Sequence record: OM339718.1
Length of the DNA: 64,000 bases
Reading direction: 5' to 3' (one strand)
The notes below the pieces were generated by a model that saw only the letters and a program-made list of their open reading frames with translations, was not told the origin of the DNA and ran no database searches. This document shows positions 2,921-26,980 of the stretch, piece by piece. The translations under genes were made by a program, and so were the position numbers. The stretch's first letter is position 1; every line of letters begins with the position of its first letter.

Positions 2921-3178
2921 ATGATTATTAGTCTGAATATGCATGAGTTTTATGAACTTTACCCGTGTTATCAAGAGTGGGTTTGTAATGAATCCCCTTC
3001 CCAATATTCTATCAATGCGGTTTATAATCGTATGATGCATAAGAAATCTCTAAACGTTATGGAAGCTAAGGAAGTTATGGCGTTTATTGCTTGGGTTGAA
3101 AACAACTCTTGCAAAGAAGATCTAGAAATCCTCAAATCAACTATCCAATATATGAAAGGTGTATTAAATGCTGCTTGA
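2921..3178 (+). CDS. Hypothetical protein
   Basis: 85-aa ORF with GAGG RBS. Confidence 0.75.
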   Translation: MIISLNMHEFYELYPCYQEWVCNESPSQYSINAVYNRMMHKKSLNVMEAKEVMAFIAWVENNSCKEDLEILKSTIQYMKGVLNAA

Positions 3179-3647
3179 ACAAATTAAGAAAGACCAAATT
3201 AAAGCCCGTAAATCAGAAGACCGTTCTACCCATCACGGGAAAGTTCGTATCAACGCTCTAACAACCCTAATTGGTGAAGCAAGTCCTTCCGGTAATCAGG
3301 TAGTAACTGACGAACAAGTCCAATCGGTTATTCGCAAATTCGTTAAAAACATTGACGAAGCAGTTACCGAGATCCGCAAAAGGGTTGTATCCGTATCAAA
3401 CGATATGACTAATCAAGAAGTGATGGATATTCTTAAAACTGATATCAAATTCACGGACTTGATGATCGAACGTGAACTGCTGAGTTCCTATCTTCCGAAG
3501 GTGTTTGGTGAAGAACATATCAAAGAGGTACTTAGTCAGCTCGTTGGTGGTTCTAACATCGGTCAAGTCATGGGCGCTTGTAAGAAAGCAGCTTCTGCCA
3601 AAGGTCTTTTGTTTGATGGTGCCCTTGTCAAAAAGGTACTGGGCTAG
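3168..3647 (+). CDS. YqeY/GatB C-terminal-like domain protein
   Basis: LLEQIKKDQIKARK, TDEQVQSVIRKFVK, ERELLSSYLP, IGQVMG and DGALVKK motifs typical of the YqeY family. Confidence 0.8.
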   Translation: MLLEQIKKDQIKARKSEDRSTHHGKVRINALTTLIGEASPSGNQVVTDEQVQSVIRKFVKNIDEAVTEIRKRVVSVSNDMTNQEVMDILKTDIKFTDLMIERELLSSYLPKVFGEEHIKEVLSQLVGGSNIGQVMGACKKAASAKGLLFDGALVKKVLG

Positions 3648-6570: not shown

Positions 6571-7020
6571 ATGTCTATTGAAACTCGTGTAACAAAAGTA
6601 AAACAACGTATTCATGAAGAAACCCAACGGGTTAAATCGAATGCAATTGTTACTTGGGGCCTGTTCTTCATGGCAGCAGCCCTTGCATCAATCCCTGCAT
6701 CCACTATGTATGGCCCTATTATCATAGGTGCTATCGTGATGGTGATGTTCCAGTATCTGACCATGATCTCTTATGCTAAAGAACGGGTAGGTTATCTTGG
6801 TAAAGCGTATGCTAACCCAATGGCACTGATCTACATCGAGAGTGGTATTGATGGGGTTAAAGACCTCGAAGAGTCAATTCGGAAGTGGGAAGCAATGACC
6901 GACGATGAGCGAGAAGCCGCCAACAAACGAATCAATGTGATCACGGTTGTGGCTCTTTTGGCTCTCATTGCTGCCGTTTCTGGCTTCTTCTGTGGTCTTT
7001 TCTGGCTTCTTCCAGTATAA
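6571..7020 (+). CDS. Multi-pass membrane protein
   Basis: About three hydrophobic helices; AAGGA RBS. Confidence 0.8.
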   Translation: MSIETRVTKVKQRIHEETQRVKSNAIVTWGLFFMAAALASIPASTMYGPIIIGAIVMVMFQYLTMISYAKERVGYLGKAYANPMALIYIESGIDGVKDLEESIRKWEAMTDDEREAANKRINVITVVALLALIAAVSGFFCGLFWLLPV

Positions 7021-7063
7021 ACCACTTGCAAACATGTATTGGTTATGAGACTATAACCACATC

Positions 7064-7085
7064 AAGGGGGGTTCGCCCCCTCTTT
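7064..7085 (+). terminator. Intrinsic terminator with UUCG loop
   Basis: GGGGG(G)-TTCG-CCCCC followed by TCTTT. Confidence 0.65.
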
Positions 7086-7104
7086 CATAACATAAGGAAT
7101 AGAA

Positions 7105-7215
7105 ATGAATCCAGTAGCTAAACATAATTTCAACCGTCCTTCTGTTATGAAGGATAAGAAAGAGAATTCCAAGAAAATTCGTGGTAAAAAGCATAAGAAA
7201 TCGGAAGGTTGGTGA
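7105..7215 (+). CDS. Small basic protein (36 aa, absent from the ORF track)
   Basis: MNPVAKHNFNRPSVMKDKKENSKKIRGKKHKKSEGW with AAGGA RBS; NPVAKH...RGxxKHK resembles a common phage peptide. Confidence 0.7.
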   Translation: MNPVAKHNFNRPSVMKDKKENSKKIRGKKHKKSEGW

Positions 7216-7217
7216 TT

Positions 7218-7457
7218 ATGATTGATATGACATTATTTGGTGGTGGGGTAGTGTCTGGTCTTACAAAAGATGGAAAACCTACCCATATCAACCTTAAAGA
7301 CCATTCAATGGAAACGGTCAAACTGTCTATCCAAAAAGATGTGTTTGGGTATGAAGTAAGTATTATTATTTTTCCATGTGGTAGTACTGCAAGATTTATT
7401 GGTGATGTTCGAAATCGAACTGATGTGATCCTAAGAGATAAAGATTATAAAATATGA
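7218..7457 (+). CDS. Hypothetical protein
   Basis: ORF coupled to asiA. Confidence 0.7.
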   Translation: MIDMTLFGGGVVSGLTKDGKPTHINLKDHSMETVKLSIQKDVFGYEVSIIIFPCGSTARFIGDVRNRTDVILRDKDYKI

Positions 7458-7726
7458 AAATTACAAAAGTTGAATTGATGAAAGATATTGTAGCTACCGC
7501 ATCTATCTTGGCAAAGTATGGCTGTGATGATATTCTAGATACTCAATCTGGGTTTGTAGATTTTCTAAATGAACTGGGGTTTACTACCGTGCGAGGTAAA
7601 CCATTAACGATTTTTAATTTCAGAGTTATGGTTAGTAGTCTAACCCCATATCAGAAAAAAGAGATTATAAAAGAATTTGATGCTGGTAGAATTGACCATT
7701 TGATTAACTGTATGGTTGACGAATAA
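7454..7726 (+). CDS. asiA: Anti-sigma70 protein AsiA
   Basis: IVATASILAKYGCDDIL...FVDFLNELG aligns with T4 AsiA IITVASILIKFSREDIV...FIAFLNEIG; same 90-aa length. Confidence 0.9.
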   Translation: MKITKVELMKDIVATASILAKYGCDDILDTQSGFVDFLNELGFTTVRGKPLTIFNFRVMVSSLTPYQKKEIIKEFDAGRIDHLINCMVDE

Positions 7727-10666: not shown

Positions 10667-10934
10667 TCAATACCCACGTATGAACTTTGATACCATTTAC
10701 CGTTTTCGGTCTGTCGAAGCGGCTCAAGAATATCGCACCAGTTGTGAACGTAATTTTTATAATTATGAAATTCTTAAGAATGGATTCATTGTATTTCACA
10801 TCGATGATGATGAAAACGTAATCGCGGTTTGTGATATTGAAGATAAAGAAAAGAAAAATCCAATCTATATCAATGATGGAACCGTTTTTATTAACCAAAA
10901 AGAGAGTTTTCTTTTTATTCCGTGTCGGTGTTAA
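10653..10934 (+). CDS. Hypothetical protein (YRF family)
   Basis: 93-aa ORF. Confidence 0.7.
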   Translation: MYPNDQYPRMNFDTIYRFRSVEAAQEYRTSCERNFYNYEILKNGFIVFHIDDDENVIAVCDIEDKEKKNPIYINDGTVFINQKESFLFIPCRC

Positions 10935-11203
10935 ATATGACAGTTAAAGAATTGAAGGATAAAGCCCGGTCTTTCGGGCTTGCTGCTGAAATTATTTTGA
11001 ACAATGCAAAATATCGCGGATTCAACGATTGGATGTATGATTTCGTAACCCTTGACGAATCTCGTGGAATTACAGAAACAAACGTAGTTAAATTTTATTT
11101 TGTTAGCGGTGTTCATACCATTTCCCATCCAGTCAATATGGTGGTGTTGGGCCATTCACCAGAAAAAGTTATTGGTGAATTTCATAAGGAGGTTATCGAA
11201 TGA
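10922..11203 (+). CDS. Hypothetical protein
   Basis: 93-aa ORF; start uncertain. Confidence 0.65.
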   Translation: MSVLNMTVKELKDKARSFGLAAEIILNNAKYRGFNDWMYDFVTLDESRGITETNVVKFYFVSGVHTISHPVNMVVLGHSPEKVIGEFHKEVIE

Positions 11204-11859
11204 CCATAAAATGGAGGGATTACGAACTATCTCTCTGCGAGAGAAAAGAAATAAAAGATTTTGTGGAAACTCATCATTATTCTCATAATATAAATGGTCT
11301 AAAAACTTCTTATTGTTTTCGTATTACTGATAAAAACGGGAAGTTGGTTGGTGCTGTTATATTTGGACAATTAAGTACAACTGCATGGAAAAAATTTTCT
11401 GATAAAGAATGTGACGTCTTGGAATTACGACGTCTTGTATTATTGGATGAATTACCTCATAATTCCGAATCATGGGTTATTGGTTCGTGTTTGAGAATAT
11501 TAAAAAAATTAAAAACTCATAAAGTTGTAATTAGTTATGCAGATCCGTTTCATGACCATGTTGGTATTATATATCAAGCAACAAACTGGATATACGTTGG
11601 GGAAACTCCCAAAGATAAACTACTAAAGACACCAGATGGTAAGTTATATCACAGTAGGGCAATGAGAACGAAATATAAAGGTATGTTGAAACCTTTTGCA
11701 CAAAGATTACAAGATATGAAAAATGATGGTCTTCTAGAAGAAGTGGTAGTACCGGGAAAACATAGTTATGTTTATCCGTTAGTTCACATTAAAAAACTTG
11801 ATAAAGTTAACAAGATGGAACAAAAACAATATCCAAAGCAAAGAGATATAGAAAAATGA
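11200..11859 (+). CDS. mom: Mom-like DNA adenine-modification enzyme (GNAT fold)
   Basis: HHYS, LELRRLVLLDELPHNSESWVIG, VISYAD, GIIYQATNW and QYPK are collinear with phage Mu Mom (KHYS, [37 protein letters not shown], QPYPK). Confidence 0.8.
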   Translation: MTIKWRDYELSLCERKEIKDFVETHHYSHNINGLKTSYCFRITDKNGKLVGAVIFGQLSTTAWKKFSDKECDVLELRRLVLLDELPHNSESWVIGSCLRILKKLKTHKVVISYADPFHDHVGIIYQATNWIYVGETPKDKLLKTPDGKLYHSRAMRTKYKGMLKPFAQRLQDMKNDGLLEEVVVPGKHSYVYPLVHIKKLDKVNKMEQKQYPKQRDIEK

Positions 11860-12350
11860 AAATTCGTTATGTTAAAGGTGATATGATCGCCATGATGAAA
11901 GACCCAGAAGAATTGAAGATCCCAACTCTGTTCGTTCATGGGTGTAATTGTCATACTGCTATGGGATCTGGTATTGCGGCTGGTATTGCAATGAACTTCC
12001 CAGACGCACCAATTGTAGATGCACATTTCCAACGGCTGTTTAAGACAAACGGTCAAGTGGATATTGGAATGTTGGGTCAATATAGCTGGACTCCCTTAGA
12101 TTATGACTCTCGATTGATTAACCTATACACACAATATTTCCCCGGTCGAGATCTTCGTTTGGATGCATTAGAGAATGGTTTCGTCCACTTAGCGGAAGAT
12201 TTTGGATATGAAGGGTATCGACTTATATTCCCAAAGATTGGGGCTGGTGTTGCCGGTGGGGATTGGGATGTTATCTCACAAGTAATTGAAAATTGTTTTG
12301 ACGAAGACGACTTTGAAGAATTGATTTGTGTCGAATGGGATAAAAAGTAA
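11856..12350 (+). CDS. Macrodomain protein (ADP-ribose binding/hydrolase, T4 Tk.4-like)
   Basis: YVKGDM, HGCNCHTAMGSGIAAGIA, NLYTQ and FPKIGAGVAGGDW motifs. Confidence 0.9.
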   Translation: MKIRYVKGDMIAMMKDPEELKIPTLFVHGCNCHTAMGSGIAAGIAMNFPDAPIVDAHFQRLFKTNGQVDIGMLGQYSWTPLDYDSRLINLYTQYFPGRDLRLDALENGFVHLAEDFGYEGYRLIFPKIGAGVAGGDWDVISQVIENCFDEDDFEELICVEWDKK

Positions 12351-12363
12351 TCATTAATCTCCC

Positions 12364-12398
12364 AAAGGCTCCATCCTAAATAAGGTTGGAGCCTTTTT
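12364..12398 (+). terminator. Terminator hairpin carrying late promoter CTAAATA (12376-12382) in its apical part
   Basis: AAAGGCTCCA...TGGAGCCTTT stem with inner CCT/AGG pairs and AAATA loop, then a T-tract. Confidence 0.75.
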
Positions 12399-12415
12399 AT
12401 TTGGAGAGATTAACA

Positions 12416-12793
12416 ATGGTAAGATACAAGGCAATTATATTTGGGATTCTTCTTATTTTGGCTGGTGGGTCTGTTTGGTATATGTTCAACAAGATCGAAT
12501 CACAGGCAATAACAATCGGAGAGATGACCCAACAACTAGAAACAATGACATCCAAATTATCCGCCATGGAATTGAGTATAAGCGATTTCAAACAACAGTC
12601 CAGCGAGTATAGTCAGACGGAAGAGAAATCGAATAGAGAGCTTTCTAAGCGCATTGGTACGCTGGAATCTAATGCTAGTCGCGGTAAGGATGCAATAGAC
12701 AAGAAACCTAAGCTAGTAGAGAAGATAATCCAGAATGATTATGAAGAGTTTGGAAGCAGAATGGATTGCCTTACTCTGGGGGAATGTAAATGA
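12416..12793 (+). CDS. pseT.3: Inner-membrane spanin (Rz-like, PseT.3)
   Basis: N-terminal TM helix then coiled coil, KPKLVEKII motif; directly upstream of a lipoprotein. Confidence 0.85.
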   Translation: MVRYKAIIFGILLILAGGSVWYMFNKIESQAITIGEMTQQLETMTSKLSAMELSISDFKQQSSEYSQTEEKSNRELSKRIGTLESNASRGKDAIDKKPKLVEKIIQNDYEEFGSRMDCLTLGECK

Positions 12794-13089
12794 AAAAAAT
12801 TCTAATTATGATGTGTATAGTGGTTCTTGCTGCATGTTCAACACCACCGAGACCAGACCCGGTATTAGTGTTTCATCCAAATAGACCAATCCCTGTAAAA
12901 ACTTATATTCCTAAATGGACTGTTATTAAGGAAGGTGAAACAACTTATGTCGGGATGACATATGAGGACAGTTTAAGGTATAGGGCTTGGCTTGAAAAAA
13001 TAGGTGTTTATATAGATTCACAAAATAGAATGTTATGTTCTTATAGAAAGGATCTGAAAGAACCACAATGTCAAAAAGTCCCCAAATAA
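12790..13089 (+). CDS. pseT.2: Outer-membrane lipoprotein spanin (Rz1-like, PseT.2)
   Basis: Signal peptide with lipobox LAAC followed by Pro-rich segment. Confidence 0.85.
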   Translation: MKKILIMMCIVVLAACSTPPRPDPVLVFHPNRPIPVKTYIPKWTVIKEGETTYVGMTYEDSLRYRAWLEKIGVYIDSQNRMLCSYRKDLKEPQCQKVPK

Positions 13090-23135: not shown

Positions 23136-23210
23136 TGGCAGGGCGTTGAGGATTCGAACCCCAGTCGCACGGATTTGGAATCCGGCATAATACCACTATA
23201 CTAACACCCT
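23136..23210 (-). tRNA. trnW: tRNA-Trp(CCA)
   Basis: Cloverleaf, loop TT-CCA-AA, encoded CCA end. Confidence 0.92.
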
Positions 23211-23620
23211 AGAATCGATCCGGTCGCACCACCACCAGACTTAATAGCATTGGCTACCCGAGCCCACACATGTAAACCTCAAACACCCCAATGAGTTAAG
23301 CCTACAAGAAGGTCTTGCTCGTTACTTTTACGCTTAGGCCCTTACGGGAATCTAAGCCTTTTATGTTTAACGTCATAACAGACGCGCTCATGTGATGGCT
23401 TGAATCAGTGGTCATTCACAAGCAATACTCCCTATGTAACCTTTTACCCGTCACGGACTGGAACCTTATTACAGGAAAGGAACCTACATCACCATTTGAG
23501 TAATGGGAGAGGTCGGGGTTCGGTTTTTATTTTCTAGCTTTCACTAGATTTTTTACAAATACCGGTGGGCTACTTAAAGCGTCGATTCTCATAGACCGGA
23601 CTATTGACGAGAATCCAAAA
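23211..23620 (-). ncRNA. Candidate structured RNA of about 400 nt between tRNA-Thr and tRNA-Trp
   Basis: No ORF, GNRA-capped hairpins, complementary blocks at both ends. Confidence 0.5.
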
Positions 23621-23622
23621 TT

Positions 23623-23698
23623 TGGAGCCGAGTGTGGGACTCAAACCCACGACCTACGGATTACAAGACCGTCGCTCTATCAACTGAGCTAACCCGGC
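23623..23698 (-). tRNA. trnT: tRNA-Thr(TGT)
   Basis: Cloverleaf, loop CT-TGT-AA, CCA end. Confidence 0.92.
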
Positions 23699-23699
23699 A

Positions 23700-23977
23700 G
23701 AGGATTATAATCAGGATCGTTAGACTGTGATTATATCCTAATGTAGTTGACATGCTATCACAAGGAGGAAGGACGTTCAACTGATTTTTGCCCATCTGTT
23801 CGTTGTTTGGTAAAGGACAGTTACCTCAAGTTAAACCCTGCTTGTCAAGGGGTAGTTAACATATCGTCTTTATACTACCAATCCCGCCTGAAACCTAAAG
23901 GCACGTTTCAGGATATCCAGATTCTCTATGGCTGGCTTATTCCGGGGCATACGTCGTTACCCGTTCTTTGTGCTAAG
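23700..23977 (-). ncRNA. Candidate structured RNA between tRNA-Pro and tRNA-Thr
   Basis: CCTGAAAC/GTTTCAGG and ATAATCA/TGATTAT stems; no sense ORF. Confidence 0.4.
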
Positions 23978-24053
23978 TGGTCGGTGATACAGGACTCGAA
24001 CCTGTGACCCTCTGGTCCCAAACCAGACGCGCTACCAACTGCGCTAATCACCG
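23978..24053 (-). tRNA. trnP: tRNA-Pro(TGG)
   Basis: Cloverleaf, loop TT-TGG-GA, CCA end. Confidence 0.95.
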
Positions 24054-24054
24054 A

Positions 24055-24205
24055 AAAGTTCCAAACCAACTGTATTTTACATACCAGATGACCACATCCC
24101 TATAATGGTTGATTTGGATTACCCCGTGCTTATCCGTAACGGTTTAAAACCGCAAGGGGGCATCGTCTCCGAGGATTTTATCAGAACGTCTTCTAACTTC
24201 TTCTA
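24055..24205 (-). ncRNA. Candidate structured RNA between tRNA-Tyr and tRNA-Pro
   Basis: 11-bp stem TCCAAATCAAC/GTTGGTTTGGA plus a GC stem. Confidence 0.4.
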
Positions 24206-24207
24206 TT

Positions 24208-24298
24208 TGGTGGATGCTGTTGGATTCGAACCAACTTGTTTACCCAGTGGGAACGGATTTACAGTCCGCCGCTACACCGCCATCGTAGCCGAACATCC
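24208..24298 (-). tRNA. trnY: tRNA-Tyr(GTA)
   Basis: Long variable arm, loop CT-GTA-AA, CCA end. Confidence 0.93.
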
Positions 24299-24304
24299 AG
24301 AATT

Positions 24305-24380
24305 TGGCTGGCGAGGTGGGGTTCGAACCCACGACATACGGATTAACAGTCCGCTGTTCTGCCTACTGAACTACACGCCA
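24305..24380 (-). tRNA. trnN: tRNA-Asn(GTT)
   Basis: Cloverleaf, loop CT-GTT-AA, CCA end. Confidence 0.93.
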
Positions 24381-24381
24381 T

Positions 24382-24457
24382 TGGTTGCGAGTGGCTGGAT
24401 CGAACAGCCGACTGTAGGTAATGAGCCTACCGAGATACCACTTCTACACAACTCGCA
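24382..24457 (-). tRNA. trnM: tRNA-Met(CAT), possibly initiator type
   Basis: Cloverleaf, loop CT-CAT-TA, CCA end. Confidence 0.85.
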
Positions 24458-24628
24458 TTAATATTTAGGGCGGTCTTTCACCCTTCATGAATCTTGGTCA
24501 TTATAACCCGGCTACATACGCGCATCAACATCCCTTTTGATATTTTTAGAAGCGATGGGACTCTGTATCGCTTCATTATTATCGTAAGGTCAACGACCAT
24601 TAAATTAGTGAGAGCTTACGATATTGTT
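24458..24628 (-). ncRNA. Structured spacer (three hairpins) with embedded CTAAATA
   Basis: TATCGTAAG/CTTACGATA, GAAGCGAT/ATCGCTTC and AGGGTG/CGCCCT stems. Confidence 0.4.
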
Positions 24629-24670
24629 TGGTGATCCTGTCCGGGCATGATCCGGAAACCTACCGATTAT
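24629..24670 (-). tRNA. 3' half of a split tRNA (anticodon CAT, Ile2/Met-like, or CTT)
   Basis: AT-AA-TCGGT, T arm TCCGG/CCGGA, acceptor strand CAGGATC, A, CCA; pairs with the 5' half at 25184-25220. Confidence 0.85.
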
Positions 24671-25170
24671 TCGACTATTTTAAAAAGACGTACAAATGAA
24701 GACTCGTTCTTTTTAAACCGTTGTTCTTTTGTAAGATGATATAATGTCGAACTTGACGTAAATTTACACTTATCAGAACAAACTTTCAATGTGTATTTTT
24801 TAGATTCAACTAGATGACTATTTCCTTTTCTAATAGAAAAGTGAGTTTGACAAATCGGGCATTCATATTCCACCATTTGTCTACCACCTTTCGACTTTGC
24901 ATGTTTCTTATTATTTTCAGAAACAGTCATAATCTGTAAATTAGAAATAACATCATTCGTTTTATCTTCGTCTTTATGATCGACGTGTTCTTCTGGATTT
25001 AAAATTCTACCCAAATGAACCGACATAAGATATCTCGCATAAGAGATTGTAGTTCGGTCTTCGTGTGAATTTACTAAGCATATATGACGCCTATTTTCAT
25101 TATTAATGACGACATAACCAGATTTCCATCTTTCGTTGAAGGGGTACTCTAATTCTATTTTACCTTTCAT
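24667..25170 (-). CDS. HNH homing endonuclease inserted in a tRNA anticodon loop
   Basis: EHVDHKDEDKTNDVISNLQIMTVSENNKKH beta-beta-alpha-Me motif plus C-terminal CPIC...CSDKC zinc ribbon. Confidence 0.92.
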   Translation of the reverse strand: MKGKIELEYPFNERWKSGYVVINNENRRHICLVNSHEDRTTISYARYLMSVHLGRILNPEEHVDHKDEDKTNDVISNLQIMTVSENNKKHAKSKGGRQMVEYECPICQTHFSIRKGNSHLVESKKYTLKVCSDKCKFTSSSTLYHLTKEQRFKKNESSFVRLFKIVE

Positions 25171-25183
25171 TTTCCCACCTTTA

Positions 25184-25220
25184 AAGAGTCGGTTGCTCTA
25201 ACCAATTGAGCTACAGGACC
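25184..25220 (-). tRNA. 5' half of the split tRNA
   Basis: GGTCCTG-TA-GCTC-AATTGGTTA-GAGC-A-ACCGA-CTC(TT). Confidence 0.85.
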
Positions 25221-25325
25221 ATTTTATATTTTGAGAGGATATTTAACGACACATAACAGCTATTATGTCCTCATTTCGTCGTTATTCACTCACACCGGTC
25301 TTAACGAGCAAGCAAAAGAGTCATT

Positions 25326-25401
25326 TGGAGCGGGTAACGTGACTCGAACACGCGACATTCTGATTGGAAATCAGAAGCTCTACCAACTGAGCTATACCCG
25401 C
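25326..25401 (-). tRNA. trnG: tRNA-Gly(TCC)
   Basis: Cloverleaf, loop TT-TCC-AA, CCA end. Confidence 0.95.
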
Positions 25402-25402
25402 T

Positions 25403-25486
25403 TGGTCGGGATGGACGGACTCGAACCGTCACGCCTATGGCGCTAGAACCTAAATCTAGTGTGTCTGCCAATTTCACCACATCCCG
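25403..25486 (-). tRNA. trnL: tRNA-Leu(TAG)
   Basis: Long variable arm, loop TT-TAG-GT, CCA end. Confidence 0.95.
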
Positions 25487-25563
25487 TGGTGCGCCGTACT
25501 GGATTCGAACCAGTGACCCACGCTTTAGAAGAACGTTGCTCTATCCAACTGAGCTAACAGCGC
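25487..25563 (-). tRNA. trnR: tRNA-Arg(TCT)
   Basis: Cloverleaf, loop CT-TCT-AA, CCA end. Confidence 0.95.
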
Positions 25564-25571
25564 ATTAAATA

Positions 25572-25832
25572 TTAAATATCACGAATTGTACACTTTGGAT
25601 AACGATGGCAGTTAAAATTCCTAAGACCTTTCTCGTCGTTATCACCATAACCTAAATCACCATTTGCATGTGCATACAAGAACGGATAATCTGTACAAAC
25701 TGGAATATTACCATAAAGATATCGTTTGTACATTGTACCCCAGTTATAACCCTTGGAGAACAGTGCTTTCTGAATAGCCACAGATTCTTCTGGGCTTGAA
25801 ACTTCAAAACGCATACATGGTTTATTGTTCAT
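25572..25832 (-). CDS. Hypothetical protein
   Basis: IQKALFSKGYNW pattern resembles phage hypothetical proteins; GAGG RBS. Confidence 0.75.
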   Translation of the reverse strand: MNNKPCMRFEVSSPEESVAIQKALFSKGYNWGTMYKRYLYGNIPVCTDYPFLYAHANGDLGYGDNDEKGLRNFNCHRYPKCTIRDI

Positions 25833-25870
25833 AACATATTCCTCATGCGGATTTTATATTGATTACCAAT

Positions 25871-25918
25871 TTATATAAACATCATATCATAGTTAGAAAG
25901 GATGTTTAACTTTTATTT
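25871..25918 (-). promoter_or_regulatory. 48-bp repeated promoter cassette, copy 1
   Basis: TTAAAC-N17-TATGAT on the minus strand; 47/48 identical to 26985-27032. Confidence 0.75.
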
Positions 25919-26266
25919 GAAGTATTTTTCGAAGTAAGCGACTGGATGTCTGGCTTCTTCATCATACTCGTATTTAGGGGTATCAGAAAACAACACCCTA
26001 TAAGCAGTTTTCATCCCAGAACCATATGGTATCTCAATTTCATCGTTAAAGTCAAATGCTATATAACCTTTTTTACGAAGGGACCGACAGCTAACACTCA
26101 ACCAAGGTCCGCAACAGGATTTGAGTCTACCAATTGCGTAGATATCCTTTCCCTCATTGTTAATATAGCAATAAATCTTGTCTACATCAACACCATGGAG
26201 ATTTTTCCATTCTTCGCTGGTTTGTTTGAAGACCAAACTTGATTGAATCTCAGTAAGATCTTTCAT
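25913..26266 (-). CDS. Hypothetical protein
   Basis: MKDLTEIQ start overlaps the upstream TGA. Confidence 0.7.
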   Translation of the reverse strand: MKDLTEIQSSLVFKQTSEEWKNLHGVDVDKIYCYINNEGKDIYAIGRLKSCCGPWLSVSCRSLRKKGYIAFDFNDEIEIPYGSGMKTAYRVLFSDTPKYEYDEEARHPVAYFEKYFK

Positions 26267-26652
26267 GCTAAACCACCATATATTTCCACATCCCAAGAAA
26301 TGATTTCTGTAACTTTGTAATTAGCACAGTCACCATTAGCCAAACCACGGATACAGAAAGAAGGAAGACACCCATGAACATCATACACTTTGTCATTGGT
26401 TATTTCTACGTCACCCGTAACAATAATGATATTACCTTTCTTGTAAGTTTCTACGGAATTCAGAATACCAACCGGATCGGGGGTATCTTTAGCATTATCG
26501 ACGTTAAAACATTTTTGACCAAAATTGATTAGAACTGGTAGCTTTTCAGAGAATTCATCTACAACTTGTTCACTCAAAATGAATTTTTGACCATTAGTAT
26601 TGACCAATAAACCTTTTTCATTAAGGTTATAGGCACCAAGCTTCACTTTCAT
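26263..26652 (-). CDS. Hypothetical protein
   Basis: 129-aa ORF. Confidence 0.7.
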   Translation of the reverse strand: MKVKLGAYNLNEKGLLVNTNGQKFILSEQVVDEFSEKLPVLINFGQKCFNVDNAKDTPDPVGILNSVETYKKGNIIIVTGDVEITNDKVYDVHGCLPSFCIRGLANGDCANYKVTEIISWDVEIYGGLA

Positions 26653-26887
26653 TTTAATATCTCGATTTTTGATAGAAAGGCTTCAAATGTTTACCACGCA
26701 TAATCTTAACGCATTTACCTTTACAGTGATCTTCATTGAAAATACTACTCCAAAGGACATCGCGCATGTAATTTCTGATGTATACGTTCATATTAAGCAT
26801 CTCATATTGAATTTTGGAGATGATAAACTCATTTTACGTTCAAAAGCTCATTCAACAAAAAGGAATTTGGGTTTATCATCTCGTATT

Positions 26888-26980
26888 TGGTGCGTGAGGT
26901 GGGAATCGAACCCACGATGTGCCATTATGCAGTATCGGATTTTAAGTCCGATGCGTTTCAACCAACTTCGCCACTCACGC
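26888..26980 (-). tRNA. trnL: tRNA-Leu(TAA)
   Basis: Long variable arm, loop CT-TAA-AA, CCA end. Confidence 0.93.

Follow-up and report, generated by a model that had tools for sequence, protein, structure and literature searches.

A Mom-like gene that is present or absent among closely related T4-like Aeromonas phages is predicted to encode a DNA-adenine modification enzyme

We analysed a 64-kb stretch (hereafter, the window) that forms the end of the Aeromonas phage P19 record (OM339718.1) and, in particular, a gene of its + strand which an earlier note, made from the letters alone, had proposed to encode a DNA hypermodification enzyme similar to Mom of phage Mu. P19 is a T4-like phage, as the note had supposed, with a genome of about 228 kb, its relatives being classified in the Straboviridae, Emmerichvirinae, genus Ceceduovirus. 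In the region of the gene, called mom below, P19 is 100 % identical to phage vB_AdhaM_G2 (PQ066597.1; hereafter, G2). Some relatives carry the gene (mom+) and others, among them CC2 and AP1, lack it (mom-). The features of the locus are the following:

11200..11859, + strand: mom-like gene, 219 amino acids, ATG start; intact open reading frame (ORF); Mom-family GNAT-fold enzyme, predicted tRNA-dependent adenine N6 modifier of DNA
11186..11192, + strand: strong Shine-Dalgarno sequence AAGGAGG, 7 nt before the mom ATG, read from the sequence
10937..11203 (10922..11203 from the alternative GTG at 10922), + strand: upstream small gene, 88 amino acids (93 from the GTG); PHROG 17527, function unknown
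11856..12350, + strand: downstream macro-domain gene, T4 Tk.4-like; Pfam Macro 23.1 bits; PHROG 335; annotated in CC2 as 'similar to Tk.4'
11204..11859, no strand: 656-bp segment present or absent among Ceceduovirus genomes, by junction alignment and BLAST against CC2 and AP1 and by segment identities against six relatives

The ORF is intact and overlaps both flanking genes, as had been claimed, through an ATGA at each end: precisely, the mom ATG (11200-11202) overlaps the TGA (11201-11203) of the upstream gene, and the mom TGA (11857-11859) overlaps the ATG (11856) of the downstream one. The gene is also more AT-rich than its neighbours. Its GC content is 31.7 %, and 20.9 % at third codon positions, versus a mean of 38.6 % for the window, placing it in the lowest 0.2 % of 660-nt windows by GC, with adjoining genes at 33-41 %. 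The AAGGAGG element that precedes mom serves the Tk.4-like gene in the mom-less phage AP1, and in P19 the Tk.4-like gene is probably translationally coupled to mom. The product of the upstream small gene, which is also present in mom- phages, contains no cysteine and gave only a sub-threshold Pfam match, to SAP.

By profile, by sequence search against known structures and by predicted fold, the protein belongs to the Mom family. The Pfam family PF25680 ('Mom') matched with an E value of 6e-40 and 137.5 bits, versus a cut-off of 27.1, residues 8-213 aligning to positions 2-202 of the 202 of the profile; it was the sole Pfam family matched. PHROG 1384 ('Mom-like DNA modification protein') matched with an E value of 5e-69. 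In the PDB sequence search the only significant match was 8bv8, 'Methylcarbamoylase mom' of phage Mu, with an E value of 7.5e-9 for the single sequence and of 4.4e-17 for a 32-sequence profile. The AlphaFold2 model, built on a 32-sequence alignment, had a predicted local distance difference test value (pLDDT) of 91.5 and a predicted template modelling (TM) score of 0.84. The top Foldseek match of this model was again 8bv8 (chain A; E value 9.5e-14; TM scores 0.76/0.75 over 229 columns, for a chain of 222 modelled residues). The proposed collinearity with Mu Mom was thus borne out, and the best profile match was Mom and not another GNAT family. In NCBIfam no Mom model matched, and only a sub-threshold match to the XF1762 family was obtained. 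The family itself is large: one search returned 812 clusters (90 % identity), and an exhaustive one, with E <= 1e-3, returned 2,819 (50 % identity).

A counterpart of the Mom-specific insertion, which resembles a helix-turn-helix and covers about residues 175-209 of Mu Mom, is also present; the sequence alignment extends through Mu residue 193 (P19 residue 161). In the model it appears as an extra hairpin and two helices at residues 139-176, with pLDDT values of 87-94, and the stretch holds the invariant basic residues R153, R156, K158 and K164. In Mu Mom this insertion is essential for activity.

The identification as Mom is already known, since the identical sequence is publicly labelled as Mom-like. 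The P19 record calls the gene 'hypothetical protein', the G2 record calls the identical gene 'mom-like DNA modification protein', orthologues are labelled 'Mom' in AS-yj, AS-sw and AS-szw, and in the RefSeq versions of AS-sw and AS-zj they are labelled 'Mom-like DNA modification protein'. Mom-like genes had also been reported in other T4-like and jumbo phages. For both reasons the novelty that the earlier note attached to the gene was overstated.

For the catalytic residues, we aligned the protein to 8bv8 and evaluated conservation in two alignments, of 32 close and of 70 diverse relatives. The 8bv8 chain corresponds to Mom without its first 10 residues and with the substitution S124A; the alanine lies at chain index 115, hence index + 9 gives the Mu numbering. 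The corresponding positions are:

Mu H58, P19 H26: invariant or at least 90 % conserved
Mu Y59, P19 Y27: invariant
Mu R111, P19 R78: invariant or at least 90 % conserved
Mu S124, P19 S91: Ser or Thr, at least 90 %
Mu D149, P19 D115: invariant or at least 90 % conserved
Mu Y159, P19 Y125: invariant or at least 90 % conserved
Mu R151, P19 F117: variable column (N/E/F/A/Y and others), in a gap-free alignment
Mu R154, P19 H120: His in 70 of the 70 diverse relatives
Mu W48: variable Lys/Ser column, not conserved
Mu W181, P19 L149: variable column

Six of the seven active-site residues of Mu Mom are hence kept in P19, R151 being the exception. The six are critical in Mu Mom (Karambelkar et al. 2020, PMC7261163, where the numbering is 10 lower; PMC13219725). 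The R151A variant of Mu Mom has no detectable activity, and W48 of Mu Mom lies at the dimer interface. R111 and S124, and not R151, were singled out as essential and as conserved across metagenomic space (PMC13219725). Because that work names R111 and S124 as the family-conserved residues, the R151 difference may be specific to the Mu lineage rather than family-defining. It is above all this difference that calls for caution as to the exact chemistry.

We then considered the distribution of the gene in the genus. Seven distinct phages are mom+ (P19, G2, AS-yj, AS-sw, AS-zj, AS-szw and AsSzw2) and five are mom- (CC2, AP1, Asswx_1, Assk and Aszh-1). At the mom- junction the upstream gene abuts the Tk.4-like gene through the same ATGA overlap. 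The difference between the two states is exactly 656 bp (11204..11859), and the segment is bounded by AATGA at 11199-11203 and at 11855-11859. Asswx_1 (mom-) and AS-szw (mom+) are assigned to one species. The flanks of the mom- phage Asswx_1 are 98 % identical to those of P19 and the flanks of the mom+ phage AS-sw 96-97 %, while mom itself is only 91 % identical between P19 and AS-sw. Since flank identity is independent of mom status, these comparisons suggest either recombinational exchange among relatives or repeated deletion between the two short AATGA repeats. The idea of an acquired module put forward in the earlier note is supported by the clean presence or absence of the segment in otherwise close relatives and by its low GC content; the overlaps with the neighbours, which were also cited for it, are by themselves no evidence of acquisition, because genes of this block are normally packed with 4-bp ATGA overlaps, and the mom-less junction has one too. 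In AsSzw2 the mom neighbourhood is mosaic: its mom has 93 % nucleotide identity to that of P19, and its upstream flank 76 %, versus 94-98 % in the other relatives.

Where the gene is present it is under strong purifying selection. Between the four mom+ alleles compared there are 35-46 synonymous versus 9-13 non-synonymous differences; the rate of synonymous substitution per site (dS) is 0.33-0.47, and the ratio of the non-synonymous rate to it (dN/dS) is about 0.05. The nearest homologues outside Aeromonas phages, 54-64 % identical, come from Salmonella phages and from metagenomic contigs of >120 kb that look phage-like, where they adjoin ligases, PNKP, methyltransferases and, in one case, a gene similar to that of CCA-adding enzymes. 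In the metagenomic contig SRR33375183_15796, which holds one of these nearest homologues, the Mom-like gene (6602..7264) is followed directly by a PolyA_pol/CCA-adding-enzyme-like gene and is surrounded by several DNA methyltransferase genes and Gad2-domain genes, a neighbourhood that may be a counter-defence cluster.

The earlier note had set adenine hypermodification against the hydroxymethylcytosine and glucosylation of T4-like phages; this contrast does not apply here, as the Ceceduovirus lineage has no such genes. Neither a dCMP hydroxymethylase nor a glucosyltransferase is found in the complete G2 annotation, and no gp42-like paralogue was found by phmmer with the phage thymidylate synthase against all stop-to-stop segments. 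A hidden hydroxymethylcytosine pathway was accordingly rejected, the whole G2 annotation and the phmmer search both being negative. According to Petrov et al., gene 42 occurs among Aeromonas phages only in 44RR, 31 and 25. The G2 genes include two N6-adenine-methyltransferase-like genes, one dUTPase and one endonuclease II gene.

A survey of 2021 (PMC8056088) found homologues of DenA and Alc and no known modification gene in AS-szw, AS-zj and Asswx_1, and proposed one of unknown nature; mom was not noticed by it. The gene cannot fully explain this DenA/Alc puzzle, because Asswx_1 is without mom. As a separate observation, the 'host transcription inhibitor' gene of G2 (PQ066597.1, 51806..52321) has a sub-threshold match to Pfam ALC (20.4 bits versus 25). 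With the endonuclease II gene, in a genome lacking dCMP hydroxymethylase, it presents the puzzle raised by that survey, namely which DNA such proteins would tell apart where cytosine carries no modification.

The chemistry expected of the P19 protein comes from Mu. Mu Mom acts on double-stranded DNA once it is replicated, loading adenine N6 with the glycine of Gly-tRNA-Gly; a rearrangement on the base then turns the glycyl-adenine into N6-carbamoylmethyl-deoxyadenosine (Silva et al. 2026, PMC13219725). The reaction depends on Gly-tRNA-Gly and not on a coenzyme A (CoA) thioester; 15-25 % of the Mu adenines are modified, in a loose SASNY context, and the modification protects against restriction (PMC13219725). 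By analogy, in P19 the GNAT core and the Mom-specific insertion would together form a basic cleft that binds replicated phage DNA; a glycyl group would be taken from charged tRNA-Gly, either of the host or phage-encoded, and put onto N6 of adenines in a loose sequence context, where the glycyl-adenine would rearrange on the base to give N6-carbamoylmethyl-deoxyadenosine. This base would keep its pairing and block many restriction endonucleases. The gene would be translated from the strong Shine-Dalgarno sequence, probably coupled to its neighbours, within an early-gene block, and it lacks Com, by which Mu delays the translation of a gene that is toxic to the lysogen. For P19, a T4-like Aeromonas phage that is strictly lytic and lacks a hydroxymethylcytosine pathway, mom would in this way serve as an optional, single-gene anti-restriction cassette.

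We consider it likely, with a rough probability of 0.7 for the whole chain, that the P19 protein is a functional Mom-family GNAT-fold aminoacyltransferase that acts on double-stranded DNA and catalyses the same reaction as Mu Mom. That the protein belongs to the family, shares its fold and conserved catalytic residues and is under selection, that the cassette is polymorphic and that Com is absent has direct support in P19 and its relatives; for the P19 gene we infer which co-substrate is used, what product is made, when expression occurs and that the gene is protective.

Some points weigh against this reading. In the structural alignment only about 21 % of the residues are identical to those of Mu Mom. 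In place of R151, on which the activity of Mu Mom depends, P19 has F117, in a variable column; an invariant histidine (H120) stands at the position of Mu R154; and W48 and W181 of Mu are not kept. The authors of the Mu work state that co-substrate and substrate are not predictable from structure alone (PMC13219725). The five close relatives without mom show that the gene is dispensable. Finally, the papers describing P19 and the AS phages nowhere mention Mom or DNA modification, and the literature searched gave no DNA composition or kinetic data for any Ceceduovirus.

Several of these points also bear on the first alternative, namely that the protein is a true Mom-family enzyme of a large clade which has His at position 120 and lacks the arginine of Mu R151, and that it uses another aminoacyl-tRNA or acyl donor, leaves another adduct or acts on another base or on an RNA target. 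The clade includes P19 mom and most of its closest relatives. For such a change in specificity speak the alignment of R151 to the variable F117, the histidine found in all 70 diverse relatives where Mu has arginine, the low identity to Mu Mom and the unpredictability of specificity across the superfamily. However, both residues named as conserved and essential in the metagenomic comparison, R111 and S124, are kept together with four others of the active site, and the P19 protein contains the insertion region, which is highly conserved. Randomly chosen Mom homologues mined from metagenomes, of this clade or another, were described as active (PMC13219725). We hence regard this alternative as unlikely, while taking it seriously. 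Its more specific form, in which the His-120 clade would install a different adduct, for instance from another aminoacyl-tRNA or by keeping the aminoacyl group unrearranged, appears to us rather improbable. If it were true, Ceceduovirus DNA would carry a base not yet described, and the pairs of mom+ and mom- phages within one species would make it observable.

A second alternative is that of an ordinary GNAT acetyltransferase, which uses acetyl-CoA to modify a protein, a small molecule or an aminoacyl-tRNA and has nothing to do with DNA. The fold as such is compatible with it, as 253 PDB chains match at E <= 0.001 in Foldseek, mostly N-acetyltransferases, and some distant phage homologues are labelled 'acetyltransferase'. 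Against it, the Mom profile scores 110 bits over its cut-off and no other Pfam GNAT or acetyltransferase family was reported at E <= 0.1 for the protein. Mu Mom is by far the best structure, the next Foldseek matches being generic GNAT acetyltransferases with a TM score of about 0.5, versus 0.76. Acetyl-CoA GNATs typically have a glycine-containing loop, from strand 4 to helix 3, that binds the CoA pyrophosphate. In the AlphaFold2 model the corresponding loop (residues 82-91, leading from strand 73-81 to helix 89-104) is free of glycine, hence the GNAT CoA pyrophosphate-binding motif is absent. On this evidence an acetyltransferase of the ordinary kind seems very improbable.

Least credible of all is that mom is a passenger which no longer has a function and is decaying towards loss, as in the mom- relatives: its absence from 5 of the 12 distinct genomes and its atypical base composition would fit, but the ORF of 219 codons is intact in 4 of the 4 alleles compared, dN/dS is low, all conserved Mom-family residues are retained and a strong ribosome-binding site lies ahead of the gene.

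For the control of the gene and the source of its predicted co-substrate, we considered the following further features of the window:

7454..7726, + strand: AsiA anti-sigma factor homologue, Pfam 74.8 bits
8155..8182, + strand: best sigma-70-like promoter match (11 of 12 positions), at the head of the packed + strand block that contains mom; weak evidence
12386..13089: spanin pair, by PHROG
25326..25401, - strand: phage-encoded tRNA-Gly (UCC), by ARAGORN

From near AsiA to the spanin pair, small genes follow one another closely on the + strand, and mom lies in this block. AsiA marks the part of it ahead of mom as early genes of the T4 type. The scan for sigma-70-like promoters and terminators gave counts not above those of shuffled sequences. 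A scan for T4 late promoters with an 8-base consensus gave 10 matches versus 6.8 expected, the nearest about 890 nt upstream of mom and within another ORF, and was given no weight. As the sigma-70 and terminator scan did no better than shuffles, the timing of mom is inferred. At the mom start only a weak 6-bp hairpin touches the Shine-Dalgarno sequence, the z-score of -2.1 for the fold being mostly due to other hairpins; a sequestering RNA structure was therefore rejected.

That no Com-like activator is evident nearby was confirmed. In Mu, Com is a small Cys4 zinc-ribbon protein whose gene precedes or overlaps mom. Of 15 proteins encoded around the P19 gene none had a Com domain by Pfam, a CxxC...CxxC motif is absent from all stop-to-stop segments of 30-130 amino acids in the whole window, and the upstream ORF is the cysteine-free one described above. 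A lytic phage that destroys its host would need no delay of a toxic gene such as that of Mu.

Genes related to tRNA occur in this phage, whose Mom homologue is predicted to consume a charged tRNA. The phage tRNA-Gly is a possible source of the Gly-tRNA-Gly co-substrate. We rejected a specific linkage between it and mom, as tRNA-Gly is also annotated in the mom- phage AP1, at the same place. The near-identical G2 record encodes a CCA-adding enzyme (tRNA nucleotidyltransferase). We did not count the tRNA-Gly and the CCA-adding enzyme as parts of a mom system, because both occur in T4-like phages without mom. The tRNA-Gly belongs to a cluster of 10 tRNA genes (window 23136..26980, - strand). The P19 segment with tRNA-Gly(UCC) is unmatched in G2, CC2 and the AS phages, the match ending at the segment edge; Aeromonas phages 65 and 65.2 match it at 94 % identity, which suggests a local exchange within the cluster. 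A 159-amino-acid ORF (window 3168..3647, + strand) is labelled 'tRNA aminotransferase' in G2, where its orthologue gave only a borderline YqeY-like Pfam match of 27.5 bits.

The Tk.4-like macro protein encoded downstream of mom, also present in mom- phages, shows a weak similarity to the macro domain of the antitoxin DarG (26 bits, far below the full-length cut-off). DarG is a DNA ADP-ribosyl glycohydrolase, and the Tk.4-like protein might reverse the ADP-ribosylation of DNA by a host defence.

Compared with Mu Mom, the P19 protein belongs to the same Pfam family, has the GNAT fold with the Mom-specific insertion and a similar size, and is likewise the product of a stand-alone single gene. P19, however, has no Com, and late control of the type exerted on Mu mom by C, Dam and OxyR is not expected in a lytic T4-like phage; its mom stands in an early-gene block, whereas that of Mu stands at the genome end of a transposable temperate phage. 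Mom-like genes are also annotated in Klebsiella phages RaK2 and Muenster, Vibrio phage ICP1 (ORF102), Synechococcus phages S-SSM7 and S-SCSM2R and Salmonella phage VSiP, with 42-54 % identity to P19 by tblastn. In these large lytic phages, at least two of them T4-like cyanomyoviruses, the Mom-like genes are likewise single and their product is predicted. Their neighbours are different; for example, in RaK2 the gene adjoins frd. The Mom domains that Iyer et al. (2021) identified in jumbo phages are reported to be typically fused to domains with a restriction-endonuclease fold, whereas the P19 protein of 219 amino acids is not fused.

FemX, L/F-transferase, MprF and PacB, which are grouped with Mom in PMC13219725, use an aminoacyl-tRNA donor on a GNAT scaffold, as predicted for P19, but their acceptors are peptidoglycan precursors, proteins, lipids and natural products and not DNA. 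In the PDB searches with the P19 protein none of these four gave a significant sequence match. The hydroxymethylcytosine and glucosylation of T4 serve the same purpose as Mom, DNA hypermodification against host restriction; the T4 system works on cytosine before replication and takes several genes, whereas Mom works on adenine after replication and takes one.

The gene itself adds little, as it was already labelled and belongs to a very large family. What is added is the polymorphism of the cassette within a species, the divergent Arg/His positions and the absence of a cytosine modification pathway. Carbamoyl­methyl-adenine has so far been shown only for Mu and for the metagenomic homologues of PMC13219725, and Ceceduovirus is a convenient natural system for checking the products of Mom-like enzymes outside Mu.

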